From NCBI GenBank assembly GCA_964057225.1, contig OZ059896.1, positions 12,028,001 to 12,092,000 on the forward strand: a DNA stretch of 64,000 bases, read 5' to 3'. Positions 2,897 through 64,000 of the stretch are shown piece by piece. Position numbers and translations under genes: made by a program. Numbering within the stretch: position 1 is the first letter of the stretch; every line of letters starts with the position of its first letter. The notes below the pieces were generated by a model, which made no database searches, was not told the origin of the DNA, and saw only the letters and a program-made list of their open reading frames with translations. This DNA comes from Auanema rhodensis (taxonomy: Eukaryota > Animalia > Nematoda).

Positions 2897-3429
2897 TGTG
2901 CTGAAGCACTCTCATCCCGTGATAATAGTGTTCCTCCTTAGTTTAAGTTCAATTGTACTTCTTTATTGTCCTCTCTTTGTACTATCAATTATCCTCAACT
3001 ATCTAATCGATAATCCTGTAAGTTGTCACCAACGGCCGATTTGCCGATGAATCACCTATCGCTCTTTGCCATCTGATCCATTAGGCAAGATCTTAGGCGC
3101 GATAGCCGTCGCCCACTTGCAAGGGGGATGAATCACATAGGATTTAGACCCCTCCTCTCGCTTTCTACAATTAATACATTATCTATCACTACCGGGGACC
3201 TAGTATATAAACCCGCAATAATTCTTCTAAATCATGTCTCAATATCATTCTGCCACCGCTATCATCTTCCCGTCAATTTATTTCTGTTTTACTCGTATTG
3301 TATTCGTATCGCCGATAATAAACTCTTCTCTTGTACTCGCGTCTATTGCCTATTACTTGGACTAATATTCCACTACCACTGAACCACAAATGCCCGTTAT
3401 TCGCTCTCCAACTAGAGGACAAAACGACA
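2897..3429 (+). repeat. 5' LTR of BEL copy 1 (533 bp)
   Basis: TGTGCTGAAG...AAAACGACA; direct repeat of 11667-12199 with 3 substitutions (2987, 3063, 3191). Confidence 0.97.
3204..3211 (+). promoter_or_regulatory. Candidate LTR TATA box (TATATAAA)
   Basis: Canonical TATA in mid-LTR, ~110 bp upstream of AATAAA, the usual U3/R layout; present in all four LTRs. Confidence 0.65.
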
Positions 3430-6400
3430 TGGTGCATCAAGCCGAGTCCAACGAAGAAACTCGCGCCGAACAATGGAACAGCAGCTGCTCATTATTACTC
3501 GCTAAGCTCAAGGACAACGACGCAAGGAGGAAATCATATGCGGTACGTCAAGTTACTAATACCTCCAACAAAACCCCAAGCATGATTGACACCCGTGAAA
3601 GGGAGATTTCAAACATCAATGGGGACATCCTCGCCATCAACAAACTGATGGACGAGATGAAACACATCCCAACCGACCTACGCCCCGAGGACCAAAGTCG
3701 GATCACGAAGAACGAAGAAACTCTGCGGAAACACATCTCTACCCTACTGTCATACAGTAACGACATACAAGAACAAGTCAACTACCTGAAGGGTCTCAAC
3801 CACACTGAGAACAGCCCTGACCCAACACACACAGACAGTTCACAGCCTTCTGAGCACCACCTCATTGGAACTGCTGAACTCACACACGCCACACAACCTC
3901 GAAGCTGGGAAACATATCGATCACGGCCAACACTCAAACCTGTCGATATCCCACGCTTCGATGGCAACGTGAAAAGCTGGAAAAACTTTTGGTGCTTGTT
4001 CCACACACTGATACACTCATCGAACATGCCCACCATAGAAAAGTTTAACTACCTTCGCCAGTCATTAACAGGAGAAGCAGCTTCACAAATAGCTTCATTC
4101 CCAACGGATGAAGACTACTACTTCAGCGCAGTACATCACCTGCAGGATCTATATGATGATAACGACAACATCACACAACATCTCATGCTGGAATTTCTCC
4201 AGATACAAGCGAGAACATCCAACCAGCATGACCTCCTCTCCATGATGGACAAGATCGCAGGCATTTTTCGCCAAACTGAAGGAAACAGGAACGCCGAACT
4301 CAACTCCCTCGCTGTAGTTATCTTACACAAGAAACTACCAGGGAACCTTCTCCAAGAGATCTACAAATCATTCCCCTCGGAAAAAACACCTGACATCAGA
4401 GACCTAGTAGACATCACAAGGCGACATATCCGATGCCAAAACAAGGTGAAAATTTTCGCAGCAGATCGGTTCGAGAAACCAATCACACGAGTCTACAACT
4501 CACCACCAGGGAACACCTACAATTCCCAACGCAACAAACCAGAAGCTAAAAAACTAGCAAAAACATCCAGTTGCATCTTCTGCCAGAAACCTCACGCCCC
4601 ATGGGACTGTGACACAACAAAGTCGAGGAAGGAGCGTCTAACCATTCTCAACCAGGAAAAGAGATGCATCAACTGTCTCCGCAAAACACACAACACGGAG
4701 TCATGTCCAAGCAAACGAACATGCTCCAAATGCGGAGAAAAACACATCGACATCTTATGCGCTAATAAAAAGAAGACGACCAAAGTCAACTTAATTGAGA
4801 GCACACCCTACAATGACGAGGAAACCGAAGAACACACGGTTCAATTTTCCTCCCAGTTCTCTACCAATCAATTCAAAAGCGCCCTCCTTCCAATAGGAGA
4901 AATCAAGATAATGACGAATGGAAAATTTTCCACAATCCCTGCCATCTTGGACTCTGGATCGGACACATCTTTCATCGAAGAAGAACTTGCCAAAAAACTT
5001 CAACTACCCGTTATAGAATCTAAACGCGTAAAAATCAAGACTTTCGGCAACACAAAAAGCGTTGAACACCTCACAAAGGTGAAAGCAACAATCAAAGGAA
5101 CAGTCTCCAACATCACTGCACACCTTTGGACAAAAAAGACCTTGACGGGTCCCATCAAAACAGTCCGAATTCCAAAATCAGACAACTCCACCTTCAAATT
5201 AAATCAAGGAACCTACGTCAATCCACGCATACTCATAGGCTCCGATTTAATGTGGCAAGCTCTGACAGCCATTATACCAATCTCTGACGACCACATACAA
5301 GTCAAGACACAATTTGGAGACTTCATAACAGGAAAAGCAAGCGACCAACCATCCATCAACGCCTTCTCAGTTATAACTGGAAACACCTCTATCCCGATAG
5401 ACACATGGAACAAAAACTTCATCGAGGAGCAGCAAGAATTTACGGGAACCGAACAAGAAGAAAAACAAGCACGAGACAAACTAGTATTGGAACAATTCCA
5501 ATCCACCATCCAAAAAAGAGACGATGGTTATTACGTCTCCTTCCCATGGAAAGACAACATCAATCTTCTCCCCGACAACAAATCACTTGCTCACAGACGC
5601 CTCATAAGTCTAGTCGTAAAATTATCTCAACAACCAGATTCACTAGCAGCATACGACAAAATCATTCAAGAACAACTAGACAATGGAATAATCGAACCAG
5701 CAGAAGAACCATACCCTGACGCTCAAACGATACACTACATTGCTCATCAAGCAGTTCTGACCCCACAAAAGGAAACAACCAAACTAAGGATAGTATACGA
5801 CGCTTCCAGACACTACCAGAACAGACCCAGTCTGAACGACGTCATCCATCAAGGACCACTAATCCTACCATCACTAGTAGGAATGATTTTACGCTTCCGC
5901 TGCGGGAAAATGGCACTGATAGCAGACGTAAAGAAAGCATTTCTTCAAATAAGACTCCACGAGTCAGAACGTGACGCTACAAGATTCTTTTGGCTGAGAG
6001 ATATCTCCAAACCAATGAGCACCGAAAATACAAGAACCCTACGCTTCTGTAGAGTTCCCTTTGGAATCAATGCCTCGCCATTTCTCCTCGCAGCCACAAT
6101 TCGTCATCATCTGGAACAAAGAAGCAACGAAAACTTCCTAGCCCACCAAATTAAAGAGAACCTTTACGTGGACAACCTATTACTTGCCACAAACTCAGAA
6201 GAAGACCTCAAACTGGGATACCAAGAAACAAAGGACATATTCGCAGAAATGAACATGACACTACAAGAATTCATAACGAACAGTCCGGACTTCAACAAAA
6301 ACCTACTACTAGAGGAGAAAAACACCTCAGCAAAACCAAAAGTTCTTGGATTACCATGGGACACAGAAACGGACCAATGGATCATCCAAACCAAGCTTCC

Positions 6401-9400
6401 AGAAACAAAACTGACCAAACGTGGTATTACACAAGCCATTGCATCGATCTTTGACCCCATGGGTTTGATAAGTCCATGCCTACACCCACTACGACTCTTC
6501 CTACAGAATCTATGGACAGAGAATTACGACTGGGACACTACGTTGCCTGAAGAACACCAAAAAACATGGCATACACTAGCCGAAAACTTCAACTTCAACA
6601 AAACTCAGCAACGAGCCCTACCAGAAGATCCGAATCAACAGTACCACTTAGTTACCTGCACAGATTCTAGCGGATCAGCCCTAGGATTCTGCACATACCT
6701 CCTGGCAGCCACATCACGCATACCTACCTTGATCTTCGCTAAATCCAAGCTACACTCAAAGAACTCCAACATCACCATCCCGAAAGCAGAAATATCAGCT
6801 CTCACAGTAGGTGTCACAAACACCAACAAAATCATCAAAGAAATGAAAGACAACATCAAAATCTTGTCTACAACATTTTTATCGGACTCAGAAATAACGT
6901 TAGCATGGATAAGACGAAAACCTGATCAGAAGACAACAGGAGTCTTAGTACAAAACAGAATCAAGGAAATCTACGACCACATCGACCAAATCGAAGATAT
7001 GGATATCAAGACATACTTTGGTTACATCAACACCAAAGACAACCCAGCCGACATTGCCACAAGAGGTTGCACAACAGACGAGCTACTAAATCATTTCTGG
7101 TGGAATCCCAAAGCACAAATTGACAAAGCCATTAATGGTCCGCTCTTCTCATTACCTCAACCAGAAATCACAGTGAATACAGCTAGGACATCTGAAGAAT
7201 ACGAAGAATCCTGGCTAGAACACTGCAACACATGGATCCAAGCACAAGAAAAATGGATCGCAGAGAATTATTCGCTGTTAGAGAAACGACTACCGACACA
7301 TTACGAAGAAGCCGAACTGAACCTTCCCCATCTGCATCAACACAACCTACTCGTACGTCTTACAGCAGCACAACGAAACGACTTAAGACCACTGTTGAAA
7401 GATCATCTTTGGCACAGCCGCGGACGAATGCAGAATAGTGAACTAGATGAGAGTGCAAAACTTCCTATCATCGTCTTACCCAAAACAAGGACAGCCACCT
7501 TAATTATCGAACACGTCCACAACCAATTTCACAAAAGCACGTCACACACCATGGCCGAAGTTCGACAGAAATTCTGGATACCACAACTTCGCTCACAAAC
7601 CATCTCAGTCATACGAAGATGCGTAGAGTGCCAACGAATGAACAACCGACCATTCACGTACCCCCCCCCCTCTGGCGACATACCCAGCAGAAGACTCAAC
7701 CGAAGCCGACCATTCCAACACATAGGCCTCGACTACTTCGGACCGCTGACGGTAAAGGACAAACCTCACAAAGTATGGGGTTGCATCTATACCTGCACAG
7801 TCACACGCCTACTACACTTAGAAGTTATAGAAGACCTTACCACAAAAGCATTTCTTAACTGTCTAAGGAAGATATGGGCACGTAGAGGATATCCGGAAAG
7901 CATCACTTGCGATAACGCCACCACATTCGAACTAGGACAGAAAGTGGCGAACAGACTGTTCAGCATCGCCAACACGACACAAACAGGTGACAGCCATAAG
8001 ATAAAATGGCACAACATAACACCTTACGCCCCCTGGCAAGGAGGATTCTACGAACGCCTTATCCGATCAGTAAAAGACTCTCTTCACAAAACCATGAAGA
8101 ACATACCAACAAGCGAAGAACTGTCAATCACCTTAGCTGAATGTGAAGCAACACTCAACACTCGCCCACTCACATACATCGGATCCGACACAGGAACAGA
8201 TGAAATAATCAGACCATGTGACTTTATTCACAAAGACTTGGACCTTAACATTTCATTCCACTCGGACGATGACGACGAAGAATACCTCGACAACCCTGCC
8301 TTACAAACAAGAGCAGACACAGAAAAAGCCATCCATTCCTCCAGACAACGCACAAACAAATTCTGGGAGTTATGGATCGAACTCTACCTCAAAGAGTTAA
8401 GAGAACACCACAAGAACAACATCTCGGTGAAGAAAGCTGGTTCCAATCAACAGCCAAGAATCGACCAATACGTACTCATCAACGAGAGTCCGATACCTCG
8501 GTACAAATGGCCGATTGGAAAAATCACACATATCTCACCAGACAAGAACGGACAGACCAGAGAAGTCACGCTTCTTTCAGAATCAGGCAGAGAACTCAAA
8601 CGACCAGTGAACCTTCTACATCCGCTGGAACTCTCAGACGACGACATTCCTGAAAGACTACGAAACACCAATCCTTCGAGAGATGTCCCACCAATAAGGC
8701 AGTCTAATCCAAGGAACGTACCTAGATTATGGTACGGAGAACAAAGAACAAACCTATTCACCTTTCTATCAATATTCTCAATACTTCTACCCATCATCTC
8801 TGCCACACCAACAATATCTTGCAACTACCAAGGAGTTCAAATTCAAGGAATCTCGACAAACAATCAACAAGTATGCATCCACAACACATGCTATAACAAC
8901 AGCCACGATGGAAACCTTATATTTCCCCCAGCGGACATCCTAACCAACTACGACGTAAGCTGGACCTTCCAACACAATTCCAGAATTCATCACATGATGA
9001 TCACATGCCCAGCGGTACATTTCTGCTCCACTGTCACATGCACCTTCTGCACTGCTACACTTTTCAATCCATCTTGCTGGCCATGGACATCAATGCTACT
9101 TCTCACATTTCTTACATACATGCTCACAGCCTTATGCTACGGCATTCTATACACACCATGGGTCATAGGAAAACCAATCCGACTTTGGATACGATTATGC
9201 ACCACCATCATAATGACCATAATCAAGACGATCCGACACACACGTCAACCGAGGCCGCACAAATCAGCCATACCACTCCTAGCTCTGATGAGTTTGATAC
9301 AAGTCACCTTCTCATGCCAAGAACTCGCGATCACATCCTCCGAACAGTCCACTTGCATCCAAGAGAAATGCCACATACAAACCACGCATAATCTCAACAT

Positions 9401-11642
9401 CAGTCCATACACTCAAGAAGCCTGCCTCACATTATCAAACAATCAAGACAATATCTCTTTCTTGAGAATACAGTGGATCAAAACCAACTACAAGTGTGAG
9501 ACTCGGTCCCTTTACTTCACAAGAGAATCAAAGACTCACGTACAAGACAGCAAAAGATGCCCACACACTGGATCATGCCAAGAAGAAAAATGCAGCAACA
9601 TCACCCCAAACTCAACTGTCAGCGAACTTCACATAGCTAACCAGTACCCAGGAACAACACACTGCACAGAATCCTGTGGTGGCATAGGATGCGGATGTTT
9701 TTACCCTTCATCAGGATGTCTTTTCTACAGGACCTACCAGAAGCCGACTGATACCTCGATATATGAAGTATACGACTGCAACTCTTGGACACCTACAACG
9801 GACCTCAGCCTAACATACCGAAACGGATCAACCACCATCTCCAAAAACGTCACTCTATACTCTGACGTTCCGAAGCACATATATCCATTCACGCTAACTA
9901 TTACAAGTCTCTCACCGCCAGTCATACCTGCGATGCAATACAAATTCATCCGCAACCTTACAAGAACAGCTATATGGAATCAACAACCCATGCTCTCATG
10001 CCCGAGCAGAAGAGACGCTATAAACATGAACTGTAACGCCACACCCACCTGCGTTTGCACACCGGCAGAAGACCAGGTCAACTGCCAGTGTCACGAAACA
10101 TCCATCACCTCAGCCTTTACCAACGTACAATCAGCTATTCCAATGCTAACACCCTCTTACATGATCATGAACGAGGAAAGAAACTTACGGATCAACATTA
10201 ACAGCAACATGTTAACTGTAATCCACATCAAAATCGACGGGGAATTCCACACTTCCTCATCTCAAGACTCCACACATTGCAACATTCAGGATTCACCATT
10301 AACCGGATGTTACAACTGCAACCGAGGAGCCCAAGCAAGTATCACATGTACTTCACCTCAACCAACTTTGGCAGCTATACAATGTGGTGAATCCGCATTC
10401 ATGACACAATGCAGTCCACAAGGAACAACCAACTCCATCCAGCTGCCTATCACCTCAGCCTCACCTAGGATCACATGCACATACACCTGCGGAACACAAG
10501 AAAACACATTCCTCCTCTCAGGAATGCTGTACTACGTCAACACACTTCAAGACCTACGCTCTCATTACATACTCGGGAATCACTCGTCTCTCCAAGAAAC
10601 AGCCTTCACCTTTTCTTGGCCCGACATTACTCACTTTTACAACATCTATCAGGAATGGTACAAAGCATTAGCAACCTGTCTACTCATTGCCATAATCGCT
10701 TTTACCTTTTCCTATTACATCATTACAACATACGCTACCAGACTAGCACTAGGCACCGCCCACTACATGGCTGCCGCAACATGTTACATCTTCCTCATTC
10801 CCCTCCGCGTCTTTATCATTTTTTGGCGCCAGCTCCTTCTCCTAAAGTCAAGGAAAACTCACATCCTAGTAGTATTCATTCTATTCACTATGTCACTCGC
10901 CAACACTAGAGCCTGCGAAATCAACCTAGTCTTGCAAAGATCACAAGAAAGATGCGACTCGTTTCTGAAGCTCACAAGAGAGAAACGGATTGAATGCTTG
11001 AAGGAACTCACCCAGCACATGGATCAATCACTTAGGGATTTTTACAAAACTGAGGCAAGTGAACTCTCTGACAAATCCAATCTCATCAACAGCGCCGCCA
11101 CTGCCTTAAAAAACTTCATAAGACTCAAAGATTTCCTTAACACCGCAAGAACACACCACGTGTTCCAAAATGAGCAAGACAAGCTCAAACCTTTTGGAAA
11201 CGAGAGAAGACTAAACGAGTTGATGAAGAGTATCCAAAGGGAACACATCCCAGCGATAAACGGAGACAAAATGCCGTACAACTCCTCTACCATCAAAAGG
11301 GACGGAGAAGCGCCAGGATGTCCTCAACCCAAGGGAAACATCATCGTCGTAGAAGCGCAGCCGGAGCTCAAAGAAATATTGGAAGAACTAAAACAGATGA
11401 GATCGGAGAACAAAAGGATGACCTCAGTACTAATCGAACAGCTCGACCAACAAAGGAAAATCGACTCGCTAAAGAAAGAACTGAAAGAGATCAAGGAACT
11501 ACTAGCGAAAGGGATCCAAGCCAAGCCTAGAGTGTCTAAGGAAACGCAGACTACCGGTAGGATCAAGACTAGAAAAGAAATGGAACAAGAAATTCTACCC
11601 ACTAAGAGGAACAAGACTCAGGCGGCGATCATCACCATATAG
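3390..11642 (+). CDS. Gag-Pol-Env polyprotein, 2750 aa
   Basis: Gag DIPRFDG..W..FW (3945); three Cys/His knuckles (4572-4760); aspartic protease ILDSGS (4950); RT RIVYDAS, DVKKAFLQ, PFG, YVDN (6165); RNase H TDSS/SDSE/NPAD; integrase HHCC, GLDYFGP, CDNA, GGFYERL (~7510-8060); Env from ~8751. Confidence 0.96.
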   Translation: MPVIRSPTRGQNDMVHQAESNEETRAEQWNSSCSLLLAKLKDNDARRKSYAVRQVTNTSNKTPSMIDTREREISNINGDILAINKLMDEMKHIPTDLRPEDQSRITKNEETLRKHISTLLSYSNDIQEQVNYLKGLNHTENSPDPTHTDSSQPSEHHLIGTAELTHATQPRSWETYRSRPTLKPVDIPRFDGNVKSWKNFWCLFHTLIHSSNMPTIEKFNYLRQSLTGEAASQIASFPTDEDYYFSAVHHLQDLYDDNDNITQHLMLEFLQIQARTSNQHDLLSMMDKIAGIFRQTEGNRNAELNSLAVVILHKKLPGNLLQEIYKSFPSEKTPDIRDLVDITRRHIRCQNKVKIFAADRFEKPITRVYNSPPGNTYNSQRNKPEAKKLAKTSSCIFCQKPHAPWDCDTTKSRKERLTILNQEKRCINCLRKTHNTESCPSKRTCSKCGEKHIDILCANKKKTTKVNLIESTPYNDEETEEHTVQFSSQFSTNQFKSALLPIGEIKIMTNGKFSTIPAILDSGSDTSFIEEELAKKLQLPVIESKRVKIKTFGNTKSVEHLTKVKATIKGTVSNITAHLWTKKTLTGPIKTVRIPKSDNSTFKLNQGTYVNPRILIGSDLMWQALTAIIPISDDHIQVKTQFGDFITGKASDQPSINAFSVITGNTSIPIDTWNKNFIEEQQEFTGTEQEEKQARDKLVLEQFQSTIQKRDDGYYVSFPWKDNINLLPDNKSLAHRRLISLVVKLSQQPDSLAAYDKIIQEQLDNGIIEPAEEPYPDAQTIHYIAHQAVLTPQKETTKLRIVYDASRHYQNRPSLNDVIHQGPLILPSLVGMILRFRCGKMALIADVKKAFLQIRLHESERDATRFFWLRDISKPMSTENTRTLRFCRVPFGINASPFLLAATIRHHLEQRSNENFLAHQIKENLYVDNLLLATNSEEDLKLGYQETKDIFAEMNMTLQEFITNSPDFNKNLLLEEKNTSAKPKVLGLPWDTETDQWIIQTKLPETKLTKRGITQAIASIFDPMGLISPCLHPLRLFLQNLWTENYDWDTTLPEEHQKTWHTLAENFNFNKTQQRALPEDPNQQYHLVTCTDSSGSALGFCTYLLAATSRIPTLIFAKSKLHSKNSNITIPKAEISALTVGVTNTNKIIKEMKDNIKILSTTFLSDSEITLAWIRRKPDQKTTGVLVQNRIKEIYDHIDQIEDMDIKTYFGYINTKDNPADIATRGCTTDELLNHFWWNPKAQIDKAINGPLFSLPQPEITVNTARTSEEYEESWLEHCNTWIQAQEKWIAENYSLLEKRLPTHYEEAELNLPHLHQHNLLVRLTAAQRNDLRPLLKDHLWHSRGRMQNSELDESAKLPIIVLPKTRTATLIIEHVHNQFHKSTSHTMAEVRQKFWIPQLRSQTISVIRRCVECQRMNNRPFTYPPPSGDIPSRRLNRSRPFQHIGLDYFGPLTVKDKPHKVWGCIYTCTVTRLLHLEVIEDLTTKAFLNCLRKIWARRGYPESITCDNATTFELGQKVANRLFSIANTTQTGDSHKIKWHNITPYAPWQGGFYERLIRSVKDSLHKTMKNIPTSEELSITLAECEATLNTRPLTYIGSDTGTDEIIRPCDFIHKDLDLNISFHSDDDDEEYLDNPALQTRADTEKAIHSSRQRTNKFWELWIELYLKELREHHKNNISVKKAGSNQQPRIDQYVLINESPIPRYKWPIGKITHISPDKNGQTREVTLLSESGRELKRPVNLLHPLELSDDDIPERLRNTNPSRDVPPIRQSNPRNVPRLWYGEQRTNLFTFLSIFSILLPIISATPTISCNYQGVQIQGISTNNQQVCIHNTCYNNSHDGNLIFPPADILTNYDVSWTFQHNSRIHHMMITCPAVHFCSTVTCTFCTATLFNPSCWPWTSMLLLTFLTYMLTALCYGILYTPWVIGKPIRLWIRLCTTIIMTIIKTIRHTRQPRPHKSAIPLLALMSLIQVTFSCQELAITSSEQSTCIQEKCHIQTTHNLNISPYTQEACLTLSNNQDNISFLRIQWIKTNYKCETRSLYFTRESKTHVQDSKRCPHTGSCQEEKCSNITPNSTVSELHIANQYPGTTHCTESCGGIGCGCFYPSSGCLFYRTYQKPTDTSIYEVYDCNSWTPTTDLSLTYRNGSTTISKNVTLYSDVPKHIYPFTLTITSLSPPVIPAMQYKFIRNLTRTAIWNQQPMLSCPSRRDAINMNCNATPTCVCTPAEDQVNCQCHETSITSAFTNVQSAIPMLTPSYMIMNEERNLRININSNMLTVIHIKIDGEFHTSSSQDSTHCNIQDSPLTGCYNCNRGAQASITCTSPQPTLAAIQCGESAFMTQCSPQGTTNSIQLPITSASPRITCTYTCGTQENTFLLSGMLYYVNTLQDLRSHYILGNHSSLQETAFTFSWPDITHFYNIYQEWYKALATCLLIAIIAFTFSYYIITTYATRLALGTAHYMAAATCYIFLIPLRVFIIFWRQLLLLKSRKTHILVVFILFTMSLANTRACEINLVLQRSQERCDSFLKLTREKRIECLKELTQHMDQSLRDFYKTEASELSDKSNLINSAATALKNFIRLKDFLNTARTHHVFQNEQDKLKPFGNERRLNELMKSIQREHIPAINGDKMPYNSSTIKRDGEAPGCPQPKGNIIVVEAQPELKEILEELKQMRSENKRMTSVLIEQLDQQRKIDSLKKELKEIKELLAKGIQAKPRVSKETQTTGRIKTRKEMEQEILPTKRNKTQAAIITI
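3430..3446 (+). promoter_or_regulatory. Primer binding site, probably for tRNA-Gly
   Basis: TGGTGCATCAAGCCGAG abuts the LTR. TGGTGCATC complements the ...GATGCACCA 3' end typical of tRNA-Gly(GCC); the tRNA assignment is from memory. Confidence 0.75.
8751..10830 (+). other. Env region: signal peptide, Gn-like segment, phlebovirus Gc-like class II fusion glycoprotein, TM anchor
   Basis: Hydrophobic NLFTFLSIFSILLPIISA; Cys-rich Gn with TM; internal signal ...QVTFS|CQEL (Gc starts ~9315); RCPHTGSC and fusion-loop-like CTESCGGIGCGCFYPSSGCLF (~9660-9725); GCYNCNRGA; TM ~10665-10730. Same pattern as nematode Cer13/Atlas-type env. Confidence 0.9.
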
Positions 11643-11655
11643 ATGTTCTCTTCTC

Positions 11656-11666
11656 GACGGCCGGAG
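11656..11666 (+). promoter_or_regulatory. Plus-strand priming (PPT-position) sequence GACGGCCGGAG
   Basis: Directly precedes the 3' LTR; only weakly purine-rich; identical in copy 2. Confidence 0.5.
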
Positions 11667-12199
11667 TGTGCTGAAGCACTCTCATCCCGTGATAATAGTG
11701 TTCCTCCTTAGTTTAAGTTCAATTGTACTTCTTTATTGTCCTCTCTTTGTACTATCCATTATCCTCAACTATCTAATCGATAATCCTGTAAGTTGTCACC
11801 AACGGCCGATTTGCCGATGAATCACCTATCGCCCTTTGCCATCTGATCCATTAGGCAAGATCTTAGGCGCGATAGCCGTCGCCCACTTGCAAGGGGGATG
11901 AATCACATAGGATTTAGACCCCTCCTCTCGCTTTCTACAATTAATACATTATCTATCACTTCCGGGGACCTAGTATATAAACCCGCAATAATTCTTCTAA
12001 ATCATGTCTCAATATCATTCTGCCACCGCTATCATCTTCCCGTCAATTTATTTCTGTTTTACTCGTATTGTATTCGTATCGCCGATAATAAACTCTTCTC
12101 TTGTACTCGCGTCTATTGCCTATTACTTGGACTAATATTCCACTACCACTGAACCACAAATGCCCGTTATTCGCTCTCCAACTAGAGGACAAAACGACA
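11667..12199 (+). repeat. 3' LTR of BEL copy 1 (533 bp)
   Basis: Direct repeat of 2897-3429, followed by TSD AATTC. Confidence 0.97.
12087..12092 (+). terminator. Candidate polyadenylation signal AATAAA in the 3' LTR
   Basis: AATAAA ~110 bp downstream of the TATA, followed by a T-rich tract; equivalent to 3317-3322 in the 5' LTR. Confidence 0.6.
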
Positions 12200-24100: not shown

Positions 24101-25613
24101 AATTTTTGATCATTAAAAAACATTTAAATTTCAATATTGTGATGCTCAAAAACTGAAACAGTTGAATATTTTGTATTTTCTAAACCATTTCACTCCATCT
24201 CTTTCATTTAATTCCATATTTTAAACAATTTTATATTTCTACCACGAATTCATAACTTCATTTTTTAAATTTTTGATCATTAAAAAACATTTAAATTTCA
24301 ATATTGTGATGCTCAAAAACTGAAACAGTTGAATATTTTGTATTTTCTAAACCATTTTACTCCATCTATTTTATTTAATCCCATATTTTAAACAATTTTA
24401 TATTTCTACCGCTATTTCATAATTTCATTTTTTAAATTTTTAATCATTAAAAAACATTTAAGTTTCAATATTGTGATGCTCAAAAACTGAAACAGTTGAA
24501 TATTTTGTATTTTCTAAACCATTTCACTCCATCTCTTTCATTTAATTACATATGTTAAACAATTTTATATTTCTACCACGAATTCATAACTTCATTTTTT
24601 GAATTTTTGATCATTAAAAAACATTTAAATTTCAATATTGTGATGCTCAAAAACTAAAACAGTTGAATATTTTGTATTTTCTAAACCATTTTACTCCATC
24701 GCTTTTATTTAATTCCATATTTTAAACAATTTTATATTTCTACCACGAATTCATAATTTCACTTTTTAAATTTTTAATCATTAAAAAACATTTAAATTTC
24801 AATATTGTGATGCTCAAAAACTGAAACAGTTGAATATTTTGTAAATTCTAAACCATTTTACTCCATCGCTTATATTTAATCCCATATTTTAAACAATTTT
24901 ATATTTCTACCGCTATTTCATAATTTCATAATTTCATTTTTTAAATTTTTAATCATTAAAAAACATTTAAGTTTCAATATTGTGATGCTCAAAAACTGAA
25001 ACAGTTGAATATTTTGTATTTTCTAAACCATTTTACTCCATATCTTTCATTTAATTCCATATTTTGAACAATTTTATATTTCTACCGCTATTTCATAATT
25101 TCATTTTTTAAATTTTTAATCATTAAAAAACATTTAAATTTCAATATTGTGATGCTCAAAAACTGATACATTTAAATATTTTGTATTTTCTAAACCTTTT
25201 CACTCCATCTCTTTCATTTAATTCCATATTTTAAACATTTTTATATTTCTACCACGAATTCATAACTTCATTTTTTAAATTTTTGATCATTAAAAAACAT
25301 TTAAATTTCAATATTGTGATGCTCAAAAACTGAAACAGTTGAATATTTTGTAATTTCTAAACCATTTTACTCCATCGCTTTTATTTAATTCCATATTTTA
25401 AACAATTTTATATTTCTACCGCTATTTCATAATTTCATTTTTTAAATTTTTAATCATTAAAACATTTAAATTTCAATATTGTGATGCTCAAAAACTGAAA
25501 CAGTTGAATATTTTGTATTTTCTAAACCATTTCACTCCATCTCTTTCATTTAATTACATATGTTAAACAATTTTATATTTCTACCACGAAGTCATAACTT
25601 CATTTTTTAAATT
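12200..25613 (+). repeat. 167-bp satellite, segment 2 (~80 monomers)
   Basis: Same monomer, resuming in phase after the TSD. Confidence 0.98.
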
Positions 25614-25786
25614 ATATCCCATGTCTTAAGCTATTTATTTTCCAAATAACATATCTTCTCGGTAATCAATAAAACAAAAATTAACAGAAATCAACAGTAT
25701 TTCGTAACACATTGTAAAATGAGCGTATCATTACCCGTGGTGCTAACCAGTAATGACACGCCCCCTAACTAACACATAAACATCAG
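25610..25786 (+). repeat. DIRS left inverted terminal repeat (177 bp)
   Basis: AATTATATCCCATG...AAACATCAG is the reverse complement of 29848-30024 with one mismatch (25645). Confidence 0.95.
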
Positions 25787-25818
25787 TTTTATTTTCCGAC
25801 ATACGCTGATCGGTCGCT

Positions 25819-26544
25819 ATGCCGTCTTCACGGGAACCTTCAACTCCCCGTGATTTGGATTCTTCGTCTCATTATTCGCGTTCGCCTTCGCGAGAGCAAG
25901 ATATTCGACGTTCACGTTCTAGATCCGTTTCGTCATCTAGATCCTGTTCACTATCTCTCAGGCCTTTCAAGCGCCAGAGGCCTTGTCCTCAACCTAGCTC
26001 TGTTCCTCTACCTCCTTCAACTCCAGCCTCCAAGGAACGACCGGTTATCTCGCTTGCGGAAGATCTTCTTACTAACTTTGAACATCTCGCAGCTGGTATT
26101 ACTCTCCTTCCTTCGGACCGCTCATCACTAATTCAAGAACTCCCTCGCCCGGAATCCATCTTAGCAGATCTCCCGGTGTTGGACTCTAAACTTCAAAATC
26201 TTTTGGATGGCTCAACGAGATCATTTCATAAAGTATCAGAACAGGAGTTACGAGGACTTTACGAAAACGAGTTACAAGTTCTGAATATCGTTACTATTAT
26301 CCGTTTTCTCGGATCCAATGATGAAGGTGGCCCACTTTCTCCGAAAGTTGCTGGTTATCTCTCAATTCTGGAACGCTTTGTCAGTGCAAATCTGCGCACT
26401 TTCTTAGGAGCAACTCGAGAGCTTGCCCTTCTCAGAATGGGATTCTCTCGCCCTTCACAGAGCATGCCGAACTATCGTAAAGTTGGCCTTAGTTCGTCTT
26501 CCTCCTTTGATACGGTACTAGGAGTAAGTCACTCCGCCTTTTAA
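25819..26544 (+). CDS. DIRS ORF1, Gag-like (241 aa unspliced; probably exon 1, 25819-26523, of a spliced Gag-Pol)
   Basis: ATG-initiated ORF just inside the left ITR; Ser/Arg-rich N-terminus followed by a helical-looking region; positional homology to DIRS gag. Confidence 0.8.
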   Translation: MPSSREPSTPRDLDSSSHYSRSPSREQDIRRSRSRSVSSSRSCSLSLRPFKRQRPCPQPSSVPLPPSTPASKERPVISLAEDLLTNFEHLAAGITLLPSDRSSLIQELPRPESILADLPVLDSKLQNLLDGSTRSFHKVSEQELRGLYENELQVLNIVTIIRFLGSNDEGGPLSPKVAGYLSILERFVSANLRTFLGATRELALLRMGFSRPSQSMPNYRKVGLSSSSSFDTVLGVSHSAF

Positions 26545-26566
26545 CCTTATATTATTTGTTTTACAG
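26524..26566 (+). other. Predicted 43-nt spliceosomal intron joining ORF1 to ORF2
   Basis: GGA|GTAAGT...TTTGTTTTACAG|GCT; phase 0; contains the ORF1 stop; removal gives ...VLG-AQAVELFG... in the ORF2 frame. Confidence 0.75.
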
Positions 26567-28630
26567 GCTCAGGCCGTGGAACTGTTTGGGCGAGCACTGC
26601 GAGCCGAACTGAGAAAACCTAACGAGGTTATGAAACACCGCTCGGAGCAATCTCAACGTCGTGTGGTACCATCGGACCGTAGACACACTGTTAATAGGAA
26701 AACTACTTCCCGCTCTGTTGCTCAACGTACGAAGTTAGTTCCCTCCTTTTCTGCACGTTCATTAGCCAATCATTGTTCATTTTGGTTTTCTATTTCGTCT
26801 GATTTGTTCATTTTGCAATCAGTTATTAATTATCGTTTACCATTTAACGGTTATCTACCTCCTTTGAGTAATTTTGATTCCTCGCTTAATAACTCGGTCT
26901 CTTCAAGAAACCTTGACTTATTGATAGTGGATATGCTGTCAGAAGGCACCATTAGACCTATTCAAAAAAATGAAAAGGTATTCTTATCCCCTGCTTTTGT
27001 TGTGCCCAAGAAAGATGGAGAGTTTCGCTTTATTTTGAATCTGAGACGACTCAATTCATATCTGCAGGACCTTCCCTTCAAGCTAGAATCAATTAAAGAT
27101 GTATCACTATTGATACAACCATCGGATTGGTTAGCTAAAATAGATTTTTCGTCTGCATATCATGCTGTTCCTATTGATCCAGAACATCAACCTTTCCTAG
27201 CTTTTCGAGCTGGAGGTTCTGGTTATGTTTTTCAAGCCATGCCATTTGGCCTTAGTTCAGCTCCATTCACCTTTCATAAGATCGTTAGAGTCCTTGCTTC
27301 GTATTTACGAAGTAAAGGAGTTCGCATTATTAACTATCTAGACGATTGGCTGTTTATTGGGTCATCTGTCACTCAAGTACAAGAGCATATTCAGTTAGCC
27401 TTGTGTTTATTCAAGCAATCTGGTTTCTCAGTTAACCACACTAAATCCATTTTAATCCCTACTCAAAGAATAGAATTTCTGGGAATCAATCTAAATGCCC
27501 AGGAAGGTACATGGTCAATACCAGTATCAAAGTTAGATCGCATTCAAAATGCATTAGATCGGGTAAATAAACCAGACGCCACATTAAGATGTTTTGCATC
27601 CCTGTTGGGCTTATTGAACTTTACTGCTATTGTTCATCCCGAAATCAGTTTTTTCGTTCACTCTCTCCAACGTGCGCTAGGTGTGGTATCCTTGAAAGCT
27701 CTCTCTTCTTCCTTACACATTAACGAAAAGTTAAATAGATCGCGAGATTTGGACATAATCTTTCCTCAAGTTAAATTTATCTTGGAAACTGTAATGCATC
27801 TGCCTGTTTCGTTTTGTCCGTTTTCACCTTCGATAACTATAACATCCGACGCTTCCTTGCGAGGATATGGAGGTTGTATGGACGGTCAACAAATTTCCGG
27901 AATCTGGTCTATTGAAGAAAAGAAACTTCATATTAACTGGAGAGAACTGAGCGCTGCTTATAAAGCGGTTTCATTCTTCCTCAAATCTAAAAGTTACGTA
28001 GACGTGACCTTACTTCTTGATAACATGTCGGCTATTGCTTATATTAACAAACGAGGAGGCACTCGTTCGGCTGAAGGCTCAGATATAGCCTTAAAGTTAT
28101 GGGAATTTTGCACTGTCCGCGGTATCAGAATAAAAGCTTCTCATATTCCGGGACGACAAAATATTTCCGCCGACAAGTTATCGAGAGGACAGTTCTTAGA
28201 TAGTGAGGAGTGGTCCTTACATGATGAAATCATTAAAGAAATATTCCTTGAATGGGGAACACCTAACATTGATCTGTTTGCTTCTTCAAATAATTTCAAA
28301 TTAGATAGATATATTTCATACCTTCCAGACCCGGGAGCTTGCTTTATCAACTCCTTTGCCGTAAATTGGGCAGAAGTATCACAAGGATACGCTTACATTT
28401 TCCCTCCATTTTCAATGGTGGGGAAAGCAATAGCAAAGATTGTTCGAGATCGATGCAAAGCAATCTTAATAGCTCCGAACTGGACAAGTCAATATTGGTT
28501 CCCTACATTAAAGAAAATTCACAAGGAAGTACGGGTATTACAACACCCTTACCTCTTACGGAACCCAGTGGGAGAAGTTCACCCACTGTTGAAGAGCCAC
28601 AACTTCCAGCTCTTAGCATGGAGAATTTGA
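26567..28630 (+). CDS. DIRS ORF2: reverse transcriptase, RNase H, N6-adenine methyltransferase-like domain (ORF track starts at GTG 26576)
   Basis: FVVPKKDGEFRFILNL, KIDFSSAY, MPFGL, YLDDWL (27335); RNase H TSDAS, HINWREL, DNMSA, NISADKLSR; MT-like IDLFAS and YIFPPF. Confidence 0.95.
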   Translation, partial: AQAVELFGRALRAELRKPNEVMKHRSEQSQRRVVPSDRRHTVNRKTTSRSVAQRTKLVPSFSARSLANHCSFWFSISSDLFILQSVINYRLPFNGYLPPLSNFDSSLNNSVSSRNLDLLIVDMLSEGTIRPIQKNEKVFLSPAFVVPKKDGEFRFILNLRRLNSYLQDLPFKLESIKDVSLLIQPSDWLAKIDFSSAYHAVPIDPEHQPFLAFRAGGSGYVFQAMPFGLSSAPFTFHKIVRVLASYLRSKGVRIINYLDDWLFIGSSVTQVQEHIQLALCLFKQSGFSVNHTKSILIPTQRIEFLGINLNAQEGTWSIPVSKLDRIQNALDRVNKPDATLRCFASLLGLLNFTAIVHPEISFFVHSLQRALGVVSLKALSSSLHINEKLNRSRDLDIIFPQVKFILETVMHLPVSFCPFSPSITITSDASLRGYGGCMDGQQISGIWSIEEKKLHINWRELSAAYKAVSFFLKSKSYVDVTLLLDNMSAIAYINKRGGTRSAEGSDIALKLWEFCTVRGIRIKASHIPGRQNISADKLSRGQFLDSEEWSLHDEIIKEIFLEWGTPNIDLFASSNNFKLDRYISYLPDPGACFINSFAVNWAEVSQGYAYIFPPFSMVGKAIAKIVRDRCKAILIAPNWTSQYWFPTLKKIHKEVRVLQHPYLLRNPVGEVHPLLKSHNFQLLAWRI

Positions 28631-29550
28631 CTGGCCTAATTCCTGATATATCTAATGATACCATGTCTCTATTCTTAAACTCCTGGGCTGCAGGAACTCG
28701 TAAGCAATATAATACAGCTCTTAAAAAGTGGGAAATTTATTGTGCTTCTCACAAAATTTCTATTACTCCCTCTCCTTCAACCGCTGCAGATTTTTTGTCA
28801 TCTATGTTTAACGACAAAGCCGTTTCAACAGTTTTGGGCTATAAATCCGCACTTTGTGCTTTAGCTGACTTTCTGAAAATTAGTCCCCCTCTTCGGGATA
28901 ACCCTTTACTTAGTAGAATATCTAGGGGAGCGTTCAGATTAAAACCTCCACAACCTAAATATATAGATTCTTGGGAACCTTCCATTGTTCTTTCATATTT
29001 AGAAAGTCTGGGGCCCAACAACGAATTATCGTTGGAACTACTAACCAAAAAATTAGCAATGCTATTAGCTTTATGCTCCCCAAAACGAGTGTCAGAAATA
29101 GCGCAGTTCTCTATAGACCATGTTCAATTCAATGATAACGGTGTTACGTTTTTCATAAATTATAGAAATAAAAATAGAAAAGCGGGAATACCTCATAAAG
29201 CTACCTATGAGATTTCTTTAGACAGACCGTTACTCTGTCCGGTAGCATGTATCAAAGCATATTTAGACAAAACTGAGTCTAAACGGCTTTCAAATAATTT
29301 ACTGATATCCATCTCACAAGGAACGAGTATTACAAGTACAACAGTAGCTCGGTGGATAAGGGATATTTTATCGTTGGCAAAAATACCGCATAGATTTTCT
29401 GCGCACTCTACCCGTCACGCTTCTACTTCGTCAGCTTTTAAAAAAGGGGTTCCATTGAAAACTATAATGAGTGCCGCAAATTGGAAATCCGACACTTCAT
29501 TTTTCAAACACTACTGCAGAACCAGATCCTTTCAAGCTGCAATTTTTTGA
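28618..29550 (+). CDS. DIRS ORF3 tyrosine recombinase (frame open from 28339; likely ATG at 28618, overlapping the end of ORF2)
   Basis: Catalytic set R (PKRVSEI), HxxR (HSTRHAS), W (AANW), Y (FFKHY); N-terminal T..QY...W binding domain; LCPV motif. Confidence 0.93.
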   Translation: MENLTGLIPDISNDTMSLFLNSWAAGTRKQYNTALKKWEIYCASHKISITPSPSTAADFLSSMFNDKAVSTVLGYKSALCALADFLKISPPLRDNPLLSRISRGAFRLKPPQPKYIDSWEPSIVLSYLESLGPNNELSLELLTKKLAMLLALCSPKRVSEIAQFSIDHVQFNDNGVTFFINYRNKNRKAGIPHKATYEISLDRPLLCPVACIKAYLDKTESKRLSNNLLISISQGTSITSTTVARWIRDILSLAKIPHRFSAHSTRHASTSSAFKKGVPLKTIMSAANWKSDTSFFKHYCRTRSFQAAIF

Positions 29551-29553
29551 AAG

Positions 29554-29629
29554 ATAGCTTAAGACATGGGATATAATTTCTTAAATTTTCCTATTTTATG
29601 AAGTAAAATTTTAATTATATCCCATGTCT
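29554..29629 (-). repeat. DIRS internal complementary region (ICR, 76 bp)
   Basis: Exact reverse complement of the element's right end (30008-30062) joined through AAATT to its left start (to 25634), i.e. the circle junction. Confidence 0.95.
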
Positions 29630-29847
29630 GACTTCCCTCCACCATCCCCTGTGTGTGTTCACCATCCCTCTTTTATATTCAGCTTGAAAAAAATGTTTAT
29701 GTTATTGCAGTAGATGGTCGTCTTCGAACTCAATACCTGTAAAACCTTTTAATAGAAACAACAGTAAAATGAAGAAGTGATTTTATTGTTTCTTTTGTTT
29801 TGATGTATTATACCTTGTTACATTGTGAAGTTTATATTTTTTTGACT

Positions 29848-30062
29848 CTGATGTTTATGTGTTAGTTAGGGGGCGTGTCATTACTGGTTAGCACCACGGG
29901 TAATGATACGCTCATTTTACAATGTGTTACGAAATACTGTTGATTTCTGTTAATTTTTGTTTTATTGATTACCGAGAAGATATGTTATCTGGAAAATAAA
30001 TAGCTTAAGACATGGGATATAATTAAAATTTTACTTCATAAAATAGGAAAATTTAAGAAATT
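29848..30062 (-). repeat. DIRS right ITR (29848-30024) plus right extension (30025-30062)
   Basis: Reverse complement of the left ITR, followed by 38 bp that are otherwise found only in the ICR. Confidence 0.95.
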
Positions 30063-33000
30063 TTTGATCATTAAAAAACATTTAAATTTCAATATTGTGA
30101 TGCTCAAAAACTGATACATTTAAATATTTTGTATTTTCTAAACCTTTTCACTACATCTTTTTCATTTAATTCCATATTTTAAACATTTTTATATTTCTAC
30201 CACGAATTCATAACTTCATTTTTTAAATTTTTGATCATTAAAAAACATTTAAATTTCAATATTGTGATGCTCAAAAACTGAAACAGTTGAATATTTTGTA
30301 TTTTCTAAACCATTTCACTCCATCTCTTTCATTTAATTCCATATTTTAAACAATTTTATATTTCTACCACGAATTCATAACTTCATTTTTTAAATTTTTG
30401 ATCATTAAAAAACATTTAAATTTCAATATTGTGATGCTCAAAAACTGAAACAGTTGAATATTTTGTATTTTCTAAACCATTTTACTCCATCTATTTTATT
30501 TAATCCCATATTTTAAACAATTTTATATTTCTACCGCTATTTCATAATTTCATTTTTTAAATTTTTAATCATTAAAAAACATTTAAATTTCAATATTGTG
30601 ATGCTCAAAAACTGAAACAGTTGAATATTTTGTATTTTCGAAACCATTTTACTCCATCGCTTTTATTCAATCCCATATTTTAAACAATTTTATATTTCTA
30701 CCACGAATTCATAACTTCATTTTTTAAATTTTTAATCATTAAAAAACATTTAAATTTCAATATTGTGATGCTCAAAAACTGAAACAGTTGAATATTTTGT
30801 ATTTTCTAAACCATTTTACTCCATCGCTTTTATTTAATTCCATATTTTAAACAATTTTATACTTCTACCACGAATTCATAACTTCATTTTTTAAATTTTT
30901 AATCATTAAAAAACATTTAAATTTCAATATTGTGATGCTCAAAAACTGAAACATTTAAATATTTTGTATTTTCTAAACCATTTCACTCCATCTCTTTCAT
31001 TTAATTCCATATTTTAAACAATTTTATATTTCTACCGCTATTTCATAATTTCATTTTTTAAATTTTTAATCATTAAAAAACATTTAAATTTCAATATTGT
31101 GATGCTCAAAAACTGAAACATTTAAATATTTTGTATTTTCTAAACCATTTCACTCCATCTCTTTCATTTAATTCCATATTTTAAACAATTTTATATTTCT
31201 ACCACAAATTCATAACTTCATTTTTTAAATTTTTGATCATTAAAAAACATTTAAATTTCAATATTGTGATGCTCAAAAACTGAAACAGTTGAATATTTTG
31301 TAATTTCTAAACCATTTTACTCCATCGCTTTTATTTAATCCCATATTTTAAACAATTTTATATTTCTACCGCTATTTCATAATTTCATTTTTTAAATTTT
31401 TAATCATTAAAAAACATTTAAATTTCAATATTGTGATGCTCAAAAACTGAAACATTTAAATATTTTGTATTTTCTAAACCATTTCACTCCATCTCTTTCA
31501 TTTAATTCCATATTTTAAACAATTTTATATTTCTACCACGAATTCATAACTTCATTTTTTAAATTTTTGATCATTAAAAAACATTTAAATTTCAATATTG
31601 TGATGCTCAAAAACTGAAACAGTTGAATATTTTGTAATTTCTAAACCATTTTACTCCATCGCTTTTATTTAATCCCATATTTTAAACAATTTTATATTTC
31701 TACCGCTATTTCATAATTTCATTTTTTAAATTTTTAATCATTAAAAAACATTTAAATTTCAATATTGTGATGCTCAAAAACTGAAACATTTAAATATTTT
31801 GTATTTTCTAAACCATTTCACTCCATCTCTTTCATTTAATTCCATATTTTAAACAATTTTATATTTCTACCACGAATTCATAACTTCATTTTTTAAATTT
31901 TTGATCATTAAAAAACATTTAAATTTCAATATTGTGATGCTCAAAAACTGAAACAGTTGAATATTTTGTAATTTCTAAACCATTTTACTCCATCGCTTTT
32001 ATTTAATTCCATATTTTAAACAATTTTATATTTCTACCGCTATTTCATAATTTCATTTTTTAAATTTTTAATCATTAAAACATTTAAATTTCAATATTGT
32101 GATGCTCAAAAACTGAAACAGTTGAATATTTTGTATTTTCTAAACCATTTTACTCCATCTCTTTCATTTAATTCCATATTTTAAACAATTTTATATTTCT
32201 ACCACGAATTCATAACTTCATTTTTTAAATTTTTGATCATTAAAAAACATTTAAATTTCAATATTGTGATGCTCAAAAACTGAAACAGTTGAATATTTTG
32301 TAATTTCTAAACCATTTTACTCCATCGCTTTTATTTAATCCCATATTTTAAACAATTTTATATTTCTACCGCTATTTCATAATTTCATTTTTTAAATTTT
32401 TAATCATTAAAAAACATTTAAATTTCAATATTGTGATGCTCAAAAACTGAAACAGTTGAATATTTTGTATTTTCTAAACCATTTTACTCCACCTCTTTCA
32501 TTTAATTCCATATTTTAAACAATTTTATATTTCTACCACGAATTCATAACTTCATTTTTTAAATTTTTAATCATTAAAAAACATTTAAGTTTCAATATTG
32601 TGATGCTCAAAAACTGAAACATTTAAATATTTTGTATTTTCTAAACCATTTCACTCCATCTCTTTCATTTAATTCCATATTTTAAACAATTTTATATTTC
32701 TACCACGAATTCATAACTTCATTTTTTAAATTTTTGATCATTAAAAAACATTTAAATTTCAATATTGTGATGCTCAAAAACTGAAACATTTAAATATTTT
32801 GTATTTTCTAAACCATTTCACTCCATCTCTTTCATTTAATTCCATATCTTAAACAATTTTATATTTCTACCACGAAGTCATAACTTCATTTTTTAAATTT
32901 TTGATCATTAAAAAACATTTAAATTTCAATATTGTGATGCTCAAAAACTGAAACAGTTGAATATTTTGTATTTTCTAAACCATTTCACTCCATCTCTTTC

Positions 33001-54575: not shown

Positions 54576-55108
54576 TGTCGTTTTGTCCTCTAGTTGGAGA
54601 GCGAATAACGGGCATTTGTGGTTCAGTGGTAGTGGAATATTAGTCCAAGTAATAGGCAATAGACGCGAGTACAAGAGAAGAGTTTATTATCGGCGATACG
54701 AATACAATACGAGTAAAATAGAAATAAATTGACGGGAAGATGATAGCGGTGGCAGAATGATATTGAGACATGATTTAGAAGAATTATTGCGGGTTTATAT
54801 ACTAGGTCCCCGGAAGTGATAGATAATGTATTAATTGTAGAAAGCGAGAGGAGGGGTCTAAATCCTATGTGATTCATCCCCCTTGCAAGTGGGCGACGGC
54901 TATCGCGCCTAAGATCTTGCCTAATGGATCAGATGGCAAAGGGCGATAGGTGATTCATCGGCAAATCGGCCGTTGGTGACAACTTACAGGATTATCGATT
55001 AGATAGTTGAGGATAATGGATAGTACAAAGAGAGGACAATAAAGAAGTACAATTGAACTTAAACTAAGGAGGAACACTATTATCACGGGATGAGAGTGCT
55101 TCAGCACA
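54576..55108 (-). repeat. 3' LTR of BEL copy 2 (533 bp)
   Basis: Matches 63343-63875 with no difference seen. Confidence 0.97.
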
Positions 55109-55132
55109 CTCCGGCCGTCGAGAAGAGAACAT

Positions 55133-63382: not shown

Positions 63383-63875
63383 TTGTGGTTCAGTGGTAGT
63401 GGAATATTAGTCCAAGTAATAGGCAATAGACGCGAGTACAAGAGAAGAGTTTATTATCGGCGATACGAATACAATACGAGTAAAATAGAAATAAATTGAC
63501 GGGAAGATGATAGCGGTGGCAGAATGATATTGAGACATGATTTAGAAGAATTATTGCGGGTTTATATACTAGGTCCCCGGAAGTGATAGATAATGTATTA
63601 ATTGTAGAAAGCGAGAGGAGGGGTCTAAATCCTATGTGATTCATCCCCCTTGCAAGTGGGCGACGGCTATCGCGCCTAAGATCTTGCCTAATGGATCAGA
63701 TGGCAAAGGGCGATAGGTGATTCATCGGCAAATCGGCCGTTGGTGACAACTTACAGGATTATCGATTAGATAGTTGAGGATAATGGATAGTACAAAGAGA
63801 GGACAATAAAGAAGTACAATTGAACTTAAACTAAGGAGGAACACTATTATCACGGGATGAGAGTGCTTCAGCACA
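63343..63875 (-). repeat. 5' LTR of BEL copy 2 (533 bp)
   Basis: TG...CA on the minus strand, flanked by TSD ATATT. Confidence 0.97.
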
Positions 63876-64000
63876 ATATTTCTACCGCTATTTCATAATT
63901 TCATTTTTTAAATTTTTAATCATTAAAAAACATTTAAATTTCAATATTGTGATGCTCAAAAACTGAAACAGTTGAATATTTTGTATTTTCTAAACCATTT
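63876..64000 (+). repeat. 167-bp satellite resumes (partial monomer)
   Basis: ATATTTCTACCGCTATTTCATAATTTC... continues the monomer interrupted at 54575. Confidence 0.95.

Follow-up and report, generated by a model that had tools for sequence, protein, structure and literature searches.

A candidate 43-nt spliceosomal intron within the gag-pol gene of a DIRS1-type retrotransposon from the nematode Auanema rhodensis

A stretch of 64,000 nucleotides (nt) from the genome of the nematode Auanema rhodensis (assembly GCA_964057225.1, contig OZ059896.1, positions 12,028,001 to 12,092,000 of the forward strand; hereafter the window, numbered from its first letter) contains a 4.45-kb DIRS1-type retrotransposon, in which the gag-pol coding sequence is broken at a single place. 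We consider it likely that the 43 nt found at this break (26524-26566) represent a real U2-type spliceosomal intron, the single one in what would be one gag-pol gene. We favor this reading because exact removal of the 43 nt would restore a protein colinear with uninterrupted Gag and Gag-Pol relatives, a conclusion supported by the protein comparisons described below, because donor and acceptor form a rare pair, and because comparable introns are present in the gag genes of related nematode elements.

Results

Splice sites and reading frames of the 43-nt segment

The regions on either side of the break, all on the forward strand, are the following:

25819-26523, + strand: exon 1, 235 codons, Gag core whose N-terminus is Ser/Arg-rich
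26524-26566, + strand: candidate spliceosomal intron, 43 nt (3n+1), GTAAGT...TTTTACAG, 33% G+C
26539-26545, + strand: TTT-TAA-C, the stop of the first open reading frame (ORF1) within the intron and a formally possible +1 shifty-stop site
26567-28630, + strand: exon 2, ELFGxxLRxEL motif, basic linker, reverse transcriptase (RT) and putative Dam-like methyltransferase (MT)

ORF1 extends from the ATG at 25819 to the stop codon TAA at 26542-26544 and encodes 241 amino acids (aa). Exon 1 comprises exactly 235 codons and the junction is therefore of phase 0, with the peptides ...FDTVLG and AQAVELFG..., each read on its own, flanking the joint. Exon 2 encodes 687 aa up to the stop at 28628-28630, and the earliest ATG in its frame is found at 26630. 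An earlier note on this DNA, made from the letters alone, had proposed splicing at this place; its coordinates for the end of ORF1 (26544), the donor (26524) and the acceptor end (26566), as well as the length of 43 nt, are correct to the base, and the phase, the 235+687 aa and the junction FDTVLG|AQAVELFG which it gave also match the sequence. Its statement that the ORF2 frame opens with GTG is accurate insofar as a 684-aa ORF is listed from GTG 26576, but this start is a mere convention of ORF listing, as the frame is open from 26528, right after the TAA inside GTAAGT. The overlap of ORF1 with the ORF2 frame is confined to 26528-26541.

The donor GTAAGT occupies 26524-26529 and the acceptor TTTTACAG ends at 26566. 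These GT...AG ends match a host-like U2-type donor and acceptor consensus, which here is that of rhabditid nematodes in general, the window being without a host gene. The splice-site description in the earlier note stands for the GTAAGT donor, whereas the exon side of this donor reads GGA|GT and not AG|GT. On both strands of the window (128 kb), the combination GTAAGT N20-50 TTTTNCAG occurs once, versus 0.03 occurrences expected from shuffled sequences, and GTAAGT and TTTTACAG are each found a single time in the whole element. This motif pair coincides with the sole break in the gag-pol coding sequence. Frame-compatible GT..AG pairs around the stop number 18, and both ends are consensus-like only in the pair 26524-26566. 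The G+C content of the 43 nt is 33% as opposed to 49-53% in the flanking 150 nt; on its own this base composition is not significant, since the G+C content is no higher than this in 18% of all 43-nt segments of the coding region.

A second AG is located 6 nt past the acceptor (TTTTACAG GCTCAG; 26559-26572), the use of which keeps the frame and loses the two residues AQ.

Colinearity with uninterrupted relatives

Exons 1 and 2 were used as separate queries. An exhaustive phmmer search with exon 1 gave 12 Gag relatives (best E value 1.4e-26), six of which continue through the window's intron site uninterrupted. A profile hidden Markov model (HMM) built from these six matches exon 1 residues 4-233 (E value 1e-48) and places exon 1 residue 235 at profile position 245 and exon 2 residue 1 at position 246. 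In the profile comparison suggested in the earlier note, Gag homology thus crosses the joint into VELFG. The six ORF1 residues past the donor (VSHSAF) and the open ORF2-frame residues before AQAVELFG are unaligned on this profile, and the end of exon 1 at position 245 of 303 lies close to the C-terminus of the Gag core.

The same register is seen at the level of single proteins. When aligned locally, the 40 C-terminal residues encoded by exon 1 and the 40 N-terminal ones encoded by exon 2 fall on adjacent residues in five of the six relatives, the sixth being 2 residues shorter. From the conserved MP(S/N)Y to LFG, 28 residues are counted in P0122, P0123, P0124 and P0126, and the same MP-to-LFG distance of 28 residues is obtained for the window's element only with the 43 nt removed. 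In P0121 from Auanema melissensis (GCA_943334845; PMC9984802), FDNVTQEHTPEIFG stands opposite FDTVLG plus AQAVELFG, i.e., 14 versus 14 residues. In the public protein sets, the best Gag relative is 40% and the best RT relative 37% identical.

On the side of exon 2, relatives are 33-37% identical across up to 100% of its length, and the distant RT relatives of this identity are single long ORFs of 850-970 aa. The ELFG motif is internal to the long ORFs of P0002, P0003, P0005 and P0008, and P0004 of Panagrolaimus superbus has LF at this position. In P0002, P0004 and P0008, as well as in the loci L004 and L007 downstream of an N-terminal intron site, gag-pol is one uninterrupted ORF with no recoding site. 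The premise of the earlier note, according to which the ORFs of DIRS elements as a rule are separate or overlap, fails for gag and pol in this clade.

These alignments also bear on a different way of joining the two frames, namely a programmed +1 ribosomal frameshift at TTT-TAA-C, with the GT..AG ends being incidental. The ORF1 stop is indeed preceded by TTT and followed by C, and a +1 slip of the Phe-tRNA would enter the open ORF2 frame. Such a product would, however, contain 14 extra residues (VSHSAF plus NLILFVLQ), which are absent from all relatives. Neither the occurrence of a perfect GTAAGT and a T-rich CAG exactly 43 nt apart nor the introns of the relatives, none of which is a multiple of 3 in length, would be explained by frameshifting, and we regard it as highly improbable.

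Another option could be the production of Pol apart from Gag, either with translation starting from ATG 26630 or from a non-AUG codon, by reinitiation after the ORF1 stop, or by spliced-leader (SL) trans-splicing onto the TTTTACAG acceptor, which would give a separate Pol mRNA. Nematodes trans-splice at acceptors of this kind, and ATG 26630 is in frame. Moreover, the gag ORF of the classical DIRS-1 stands alone (PMC3266345). In this case, however, the conserved ELFGxxLRxEL, which is encoded in the open frame upstream of ATG 26630 and is part of one Gag-Pol protein in the relatives, would stay untranslated. A strong cis donor located 43 nt upstream would furthermore compete with trans-splicing, and gag and pol are fused in the relatives. 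Separate synthesis of Pol is thus improbable in our view.

The closest Gag relative, L003 878-1711 on Auanema melissensis contig CALQYR020003994.1 (40% identical), is a continuous ORF featuring an internal tandem duplication of its C-terminal part. Neither pol nor a recombinase was detectable on its 4.5-kb contig, and L003 may represent a solo or decayed gag.

Introns in the gag genes of related nematode elements

The DNA of the relatives was mapped with database proteins and the window's exons, and short translated windows across their candidate joints were compared with database proteins by script. In DIRS1-type elements of strongylid nematodes, this revealed short GT..AG introns of 43-86 nt in gag, with 35-41% G+C compared to 51-62% in the sequence on either side:

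L004, Cooperia oncophora: 2003-2072, 70 nt, ...SISE|QARQRF..., early gag
L010, GCA_036418205: 6485-6570, 86 nt, codon boundary as in L004, sequence different
L007, GCA_036373735: no intron, continuous there (~6292), the Gags of L007 and L004 being 79% identical
L005, Ancylostoma ceylanicum: 6639-6697, 59 nt, phase 2, in an Arg codon after ...(A/V)L
L008, GCA_002287525: 7088-7130, 43 nt, position and phase as in L005, with the Gags of L005 and L008 being 44% identical
L008, GCA_002287525: 6813-6855, 43 nt, further intron, in the middle of gag
L006, Cylicocyclus nassatus: 6660-6708, 49 nt, placed tentatively one codon off the L005/L008 position, weak sites GTGCTT...TTTCAAG

Two of the intron positions are each common to two diverged loci (L004/L010 and L005/L008), and every intron seen in these elements is located in gag, with none in pol or the recombinase gene. 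L008 and L006 are structurally complete DIRS1-type elements, whose inverted terminal repeats (ITRs) are 100% and 97% complementary, respectively. The window's element has no introns at the positions used by its relatives. The intron-less state of L007 fits either an occasional loss via spliced templates or a gain that took place later, in the lineage of L004 and L010.

Several further candidates were rejected. An apparent read-through intron near the window's site in P0128 (Nippostrongylus brasiliensis, L009) is actually a ~23-nt tandem duplication in a decayed copy, and three annotated introns were left unused as probable artefacts of the gene models, namely the first one in P0126 (303 nt), the first one in P0122 (1309 nt) and a 58-nt one in P0126. 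Public annotations also form chimeric host "genes" from DIRS elements, e.g., in the gene models of L005, L007, L008 and L010. The P0125 model contains a splice from gag to a position 2.5 kb further downstream, and the P0124 model reads through a frameshifted RT.

The placement of these introns is of relevance for the proposal, made in the earlier note, that intron retention versus removal sets the ratio of Gag to Gag-Pol. Here, retention would yield a functional Gag and removal Gag-Pol, with splicing efficiency defining the ratio as frameshifting does in retroviruses. In the window's element the ORF1 stop lies six codons into the intron, and the intron itself is close to the C-terminus of the Gag core; the late-gag intron of L008, and tentatively that of L006, likewise brings a stop within 0-5 codons, and inter-ORF splicing has a precedent in the plant element Ogre, as cited in PMC3735527. 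A switch would, however, be superfluous in relatives with one uninterrupted gag-pol ORF. The introns of L004 and L010 are found early in gag and one of the L008 introns mid-gag, so that retention yields just a fragment, and the L005 intron is without an in-frame stop. Furthermore, the 241-aa product of the retained intron lacks ELFG and the basic tail, both of which are included in the gene-model Gags P0123, P0125 and P0126. A regulated switch is hence rather unlikely, and the ratio hypothesis of the earlier note is not supported.

Coding regions, termini and insertion site of the element

The remaining features of the element are:

25611-25786, + strand: left ITR, the element beginning with ATT at 25611
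28339-29550, + strand: ORF3, tyrosine recombinase (translation: Pfam Phage_integrase, E value 1.2e-13)
29554-29629, + strand: internal complementary region (ICR), pairing with 25611-25634 and 30008-30062
29848-30062, + strand: right ITR and right extension, with the final ATT at 30062

Exon 2 contains the Pfam domains RVT_1 (E value 1.9e-22; 80.4 bits versus a cut-off of 29.6) and Dam, the latter with 25.9 bits (E value 9.2e-6) and thus under its curated cut-off of 28.1; PF05869 is present in relatives of exon 2. The Pfam search with exon 1 gave no family. The final 292 nt of exon 2 (28339-28630) are shared with ORF3, which uses another frame and has its first ATG at 28453, and a similar overlap of ORF3 with the RT-MT region is found in L008.

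The N-terminus of Gag (exon 1 residues 1-75, 25819-26050) is rich in Ser/Arg repeats, e.g., SRSPSREQDIRRSRSRSVSSSRS, and resembles an RS domain. A Ser/Arg-rich Gag N-terminus is common to all the nematode relatives (P0002, P0004 and P0121-P0127), and could possibly serve as nucleic-acid-binding or phospho-regulated tail. Any connection of this region to splicing would be pure speculation.

The element spans 25611-30062, as deduced from the ITRs and from the pairing of the ICR with both outer ends. The ITR arms (25606-25786 and 29848-30028) comprise 181 nt each and are 99% complementary; the true left end at 25611 was set from the ICR complement and by comparison with an empty satellite site. 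The left and right halves of the ICR overlap on AAT (29575-29577), which constitutes the circular junction and is complementary to the ATT termini. The insertion point is an ATT of a 167-nt satellite (25590-25613 / 30060-30092), and a target-site duplication is absent: six uninterrupted satellite monomers read ...TTTTTTAA-ATT-TTTGATC..., and this flank is not duplicated at the element. ATT ends together with an AAT circular junction fit recombination with a 3-bp crossover. With all of its ORFs open, the element looks like an intact and young, complete DIRS1-type tyrosine-recombinase retrotransposon of textbook structure (PMC3266345).

This state of preservation has to be considered with regard to the idea that the window holds a dead copy, in which the 43 nt are a chance insertion breaking a once continuous gag-pol ORF without any splicing. 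Public relatives are all continuous at this site, and small duplications or indels are known from decayed copies, such as the duplication of ~23 nt in L009 and the frameshifts in L004 and L010. An insertion of this kind would, however, have to carry consensus intron ends and would be the sole defect of an otherwise intact element with nearly perfect ITRs, which makes a dead copy very unlikely.

Two more retroelements break the same satellite, at 2897-12199 (+) and about 54577-64000 (-), each with one ORF of ~2750 aa (3390-11642 (+) and 55133-63382 (-), respectively). The whole window is composed of satellite and the three retroelements, and an obvious host gene is absent.

Discussion

Proposed expression of the element and arguments against the intron

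If the 43 nt are an intron, the host spliceosome would remove 26524-26566 just upstream of the ELFG motif, near the end of the Gag core. From ATG 25819, the spliced mRNA would then encode one Gag-RT-(RNase H)-MT protein of 922 aa, the layout of which corresponds to that encoded without interruption by the relatives, and the tyrosine recombinase would be supplied by the overlapping ORF3. Unspliced RNA, if translated, would yield the 241-aa Gag only, ending before ELFG and the basic tail. Retrotransposons replicate via RNA, and introns are expected to vanish quickly from them. As the genomic copy retains its intron, the usual template of reverse transcription would be unspliced RNA. We infer from these features that splicing takes place, and any role of the truncated 241-aa Gag would likewise be an extrapolation from them. 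A search among RNA sequencing runs listed none containing this stretch, and three runs labelled with the same species yielded no contig on 25790-27800, an outcome that speaks neither for nor against splicing. If the DNA belongs to the Auanema species of preprint 10.64898/2026.08.27.747507, satellite blocks of this type may be lost from somatic cells, and the element may then be scarce in RNA from whole worms. The simpler reading is that of an ordinary gag-pol intron, with spliced RNA serving as mRNA and unspliced RNA as template.

Several observations weigh against an intron. At the splice sites, exon base -1 is an A instead of a G and acceptor base -4 an A instead of a T. The conservation of GT/AG in related DIRS families, to which the earlier note had looked for confirmation, is not seen: no intron is present at the window's site in L003-L008 and L010, all of which are continuous there, and the introns of public relatives are located elsewhere in gag. 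These introns, in turn, rest on the gene models of annotators and on frame analysis. Within the window, neither blastn nor tblastn found further copies of the element, which is thus represented by a single copy. Finally, spliced RNA of DIRS-1 is readily reverse-transcribed and integrated in Dictyostelium (PMC7192593), and persistence of an intron therefore requires bias or selection. In the same system, a marker intron near the 5' end was partly unspliced in complementary DNA (cDNA) (PMC7192593), and this partial non-splicing fits the 5' location of all nematode introns described here.

Beyond the single element, it is conceivable that short spliceosomal introns in the 5' gag region are gained time and again by DIRS1-type elements of clade V/rhabditine nematodes and are kept through many retrotranspositions, but we put this forward only as a tentative idea. 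If true, elements without a protease would split their RNA into pools of spliced mRNA and unspliced template, like retroviruses do. An RT-bearing element would then also record intron gains, e.g., by reverse splicing into its RNA, and such gains would be testable via host introns matching those of the element.

Implications

The few elements known to keep introns, such as Penelope and Ogre, have informed the understanding of how RNA is sorted between translation and replication. If the splice described here is real, nematode DIRS elements depend on the host spliceosome for Gag-Pol and must copy unspliced RNA, which would offer a handle on the choice of template RNA in DIRS elements. Moreover, the differing intron positions in several nematode species make these elements naturally suited to studies of how introns are gained and lost, with one position being empty in a relative whose Gag is 79% identical. 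For genome annotation, such elements pose a practical problem, as ORF-based annotation splits or truncates them and gene prediction makes odd host "genes" out of them.

Comparison with known systems

The window's element shares with DIRS1-like elements (Piednoel et al., 2011; PMC3266345) the Gag-like ORF, the RT with a putative Dam-like MT, and the overlapping tyrosine recombinase ORF, as well as the ITRs, an ICR with the 3-bp junction AAT complementary to the ATT termini, and the absence of a target-site duplication. It differs from them by one gag-pol gene with a candidate spliceosomal intron. Introns are not mentioned in the open-access surveys of DIRS and tyrosine-recombinase elements PMC3266345, PMC4157794 and PMC3783388, and a mention in further papers is possible. 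That host cells splice the RNA of DIRS elements is evident from Dictyostelium DIRS-1 carrying artificial introns (Malicki et al., 2020; PMC7192593), but there the intron is an engineered marker and the natural DIRS-1 is intron-less.

Genomic copies keeping spliceosomal introns are also described for Penelope-like elements (Arkhipova et al., 2003, as cited in PMC8557442 and PMC4209133), which belong to another RT clade, integrate in a target-primed manner by means of a GIY-YIG endonuclease and have no gag. In Drosophila copia and barley BARE1 (PMC3735527), splicing decides which proteins are made and the unspliced RNA is the template for replication, as we propose for the window's element. However, splicing yields a Gag-only mRNA in copia and BARE1, whereas in the window's element it would yield Gag-Pol, with the unspliced RNA giving the short product.

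The closest parallel in terms of layout is provided by Ogre, a plant Ty3/gypsy element in which, as cited in PMC3735527 (Steinbauerova et al., 2008), an intron between the gag-side and pol-side regions is removed to join both. Ogre, however, belongs to the long terminal repeat (LTR) elements, encodes a protease and has a much longer intron, the splicing of which is reported as experimentally shown, whereas the element of Auanema rhodensis is a tyrosine-recombinase element of a nematode, without a protease and with a candidate intron of 43 nt. An intron-retaining retroelement which needs splicing to join gag and pol is consequently already known, and the novelty of the present case would be its occurrence in a tyrosine-recombinase element.

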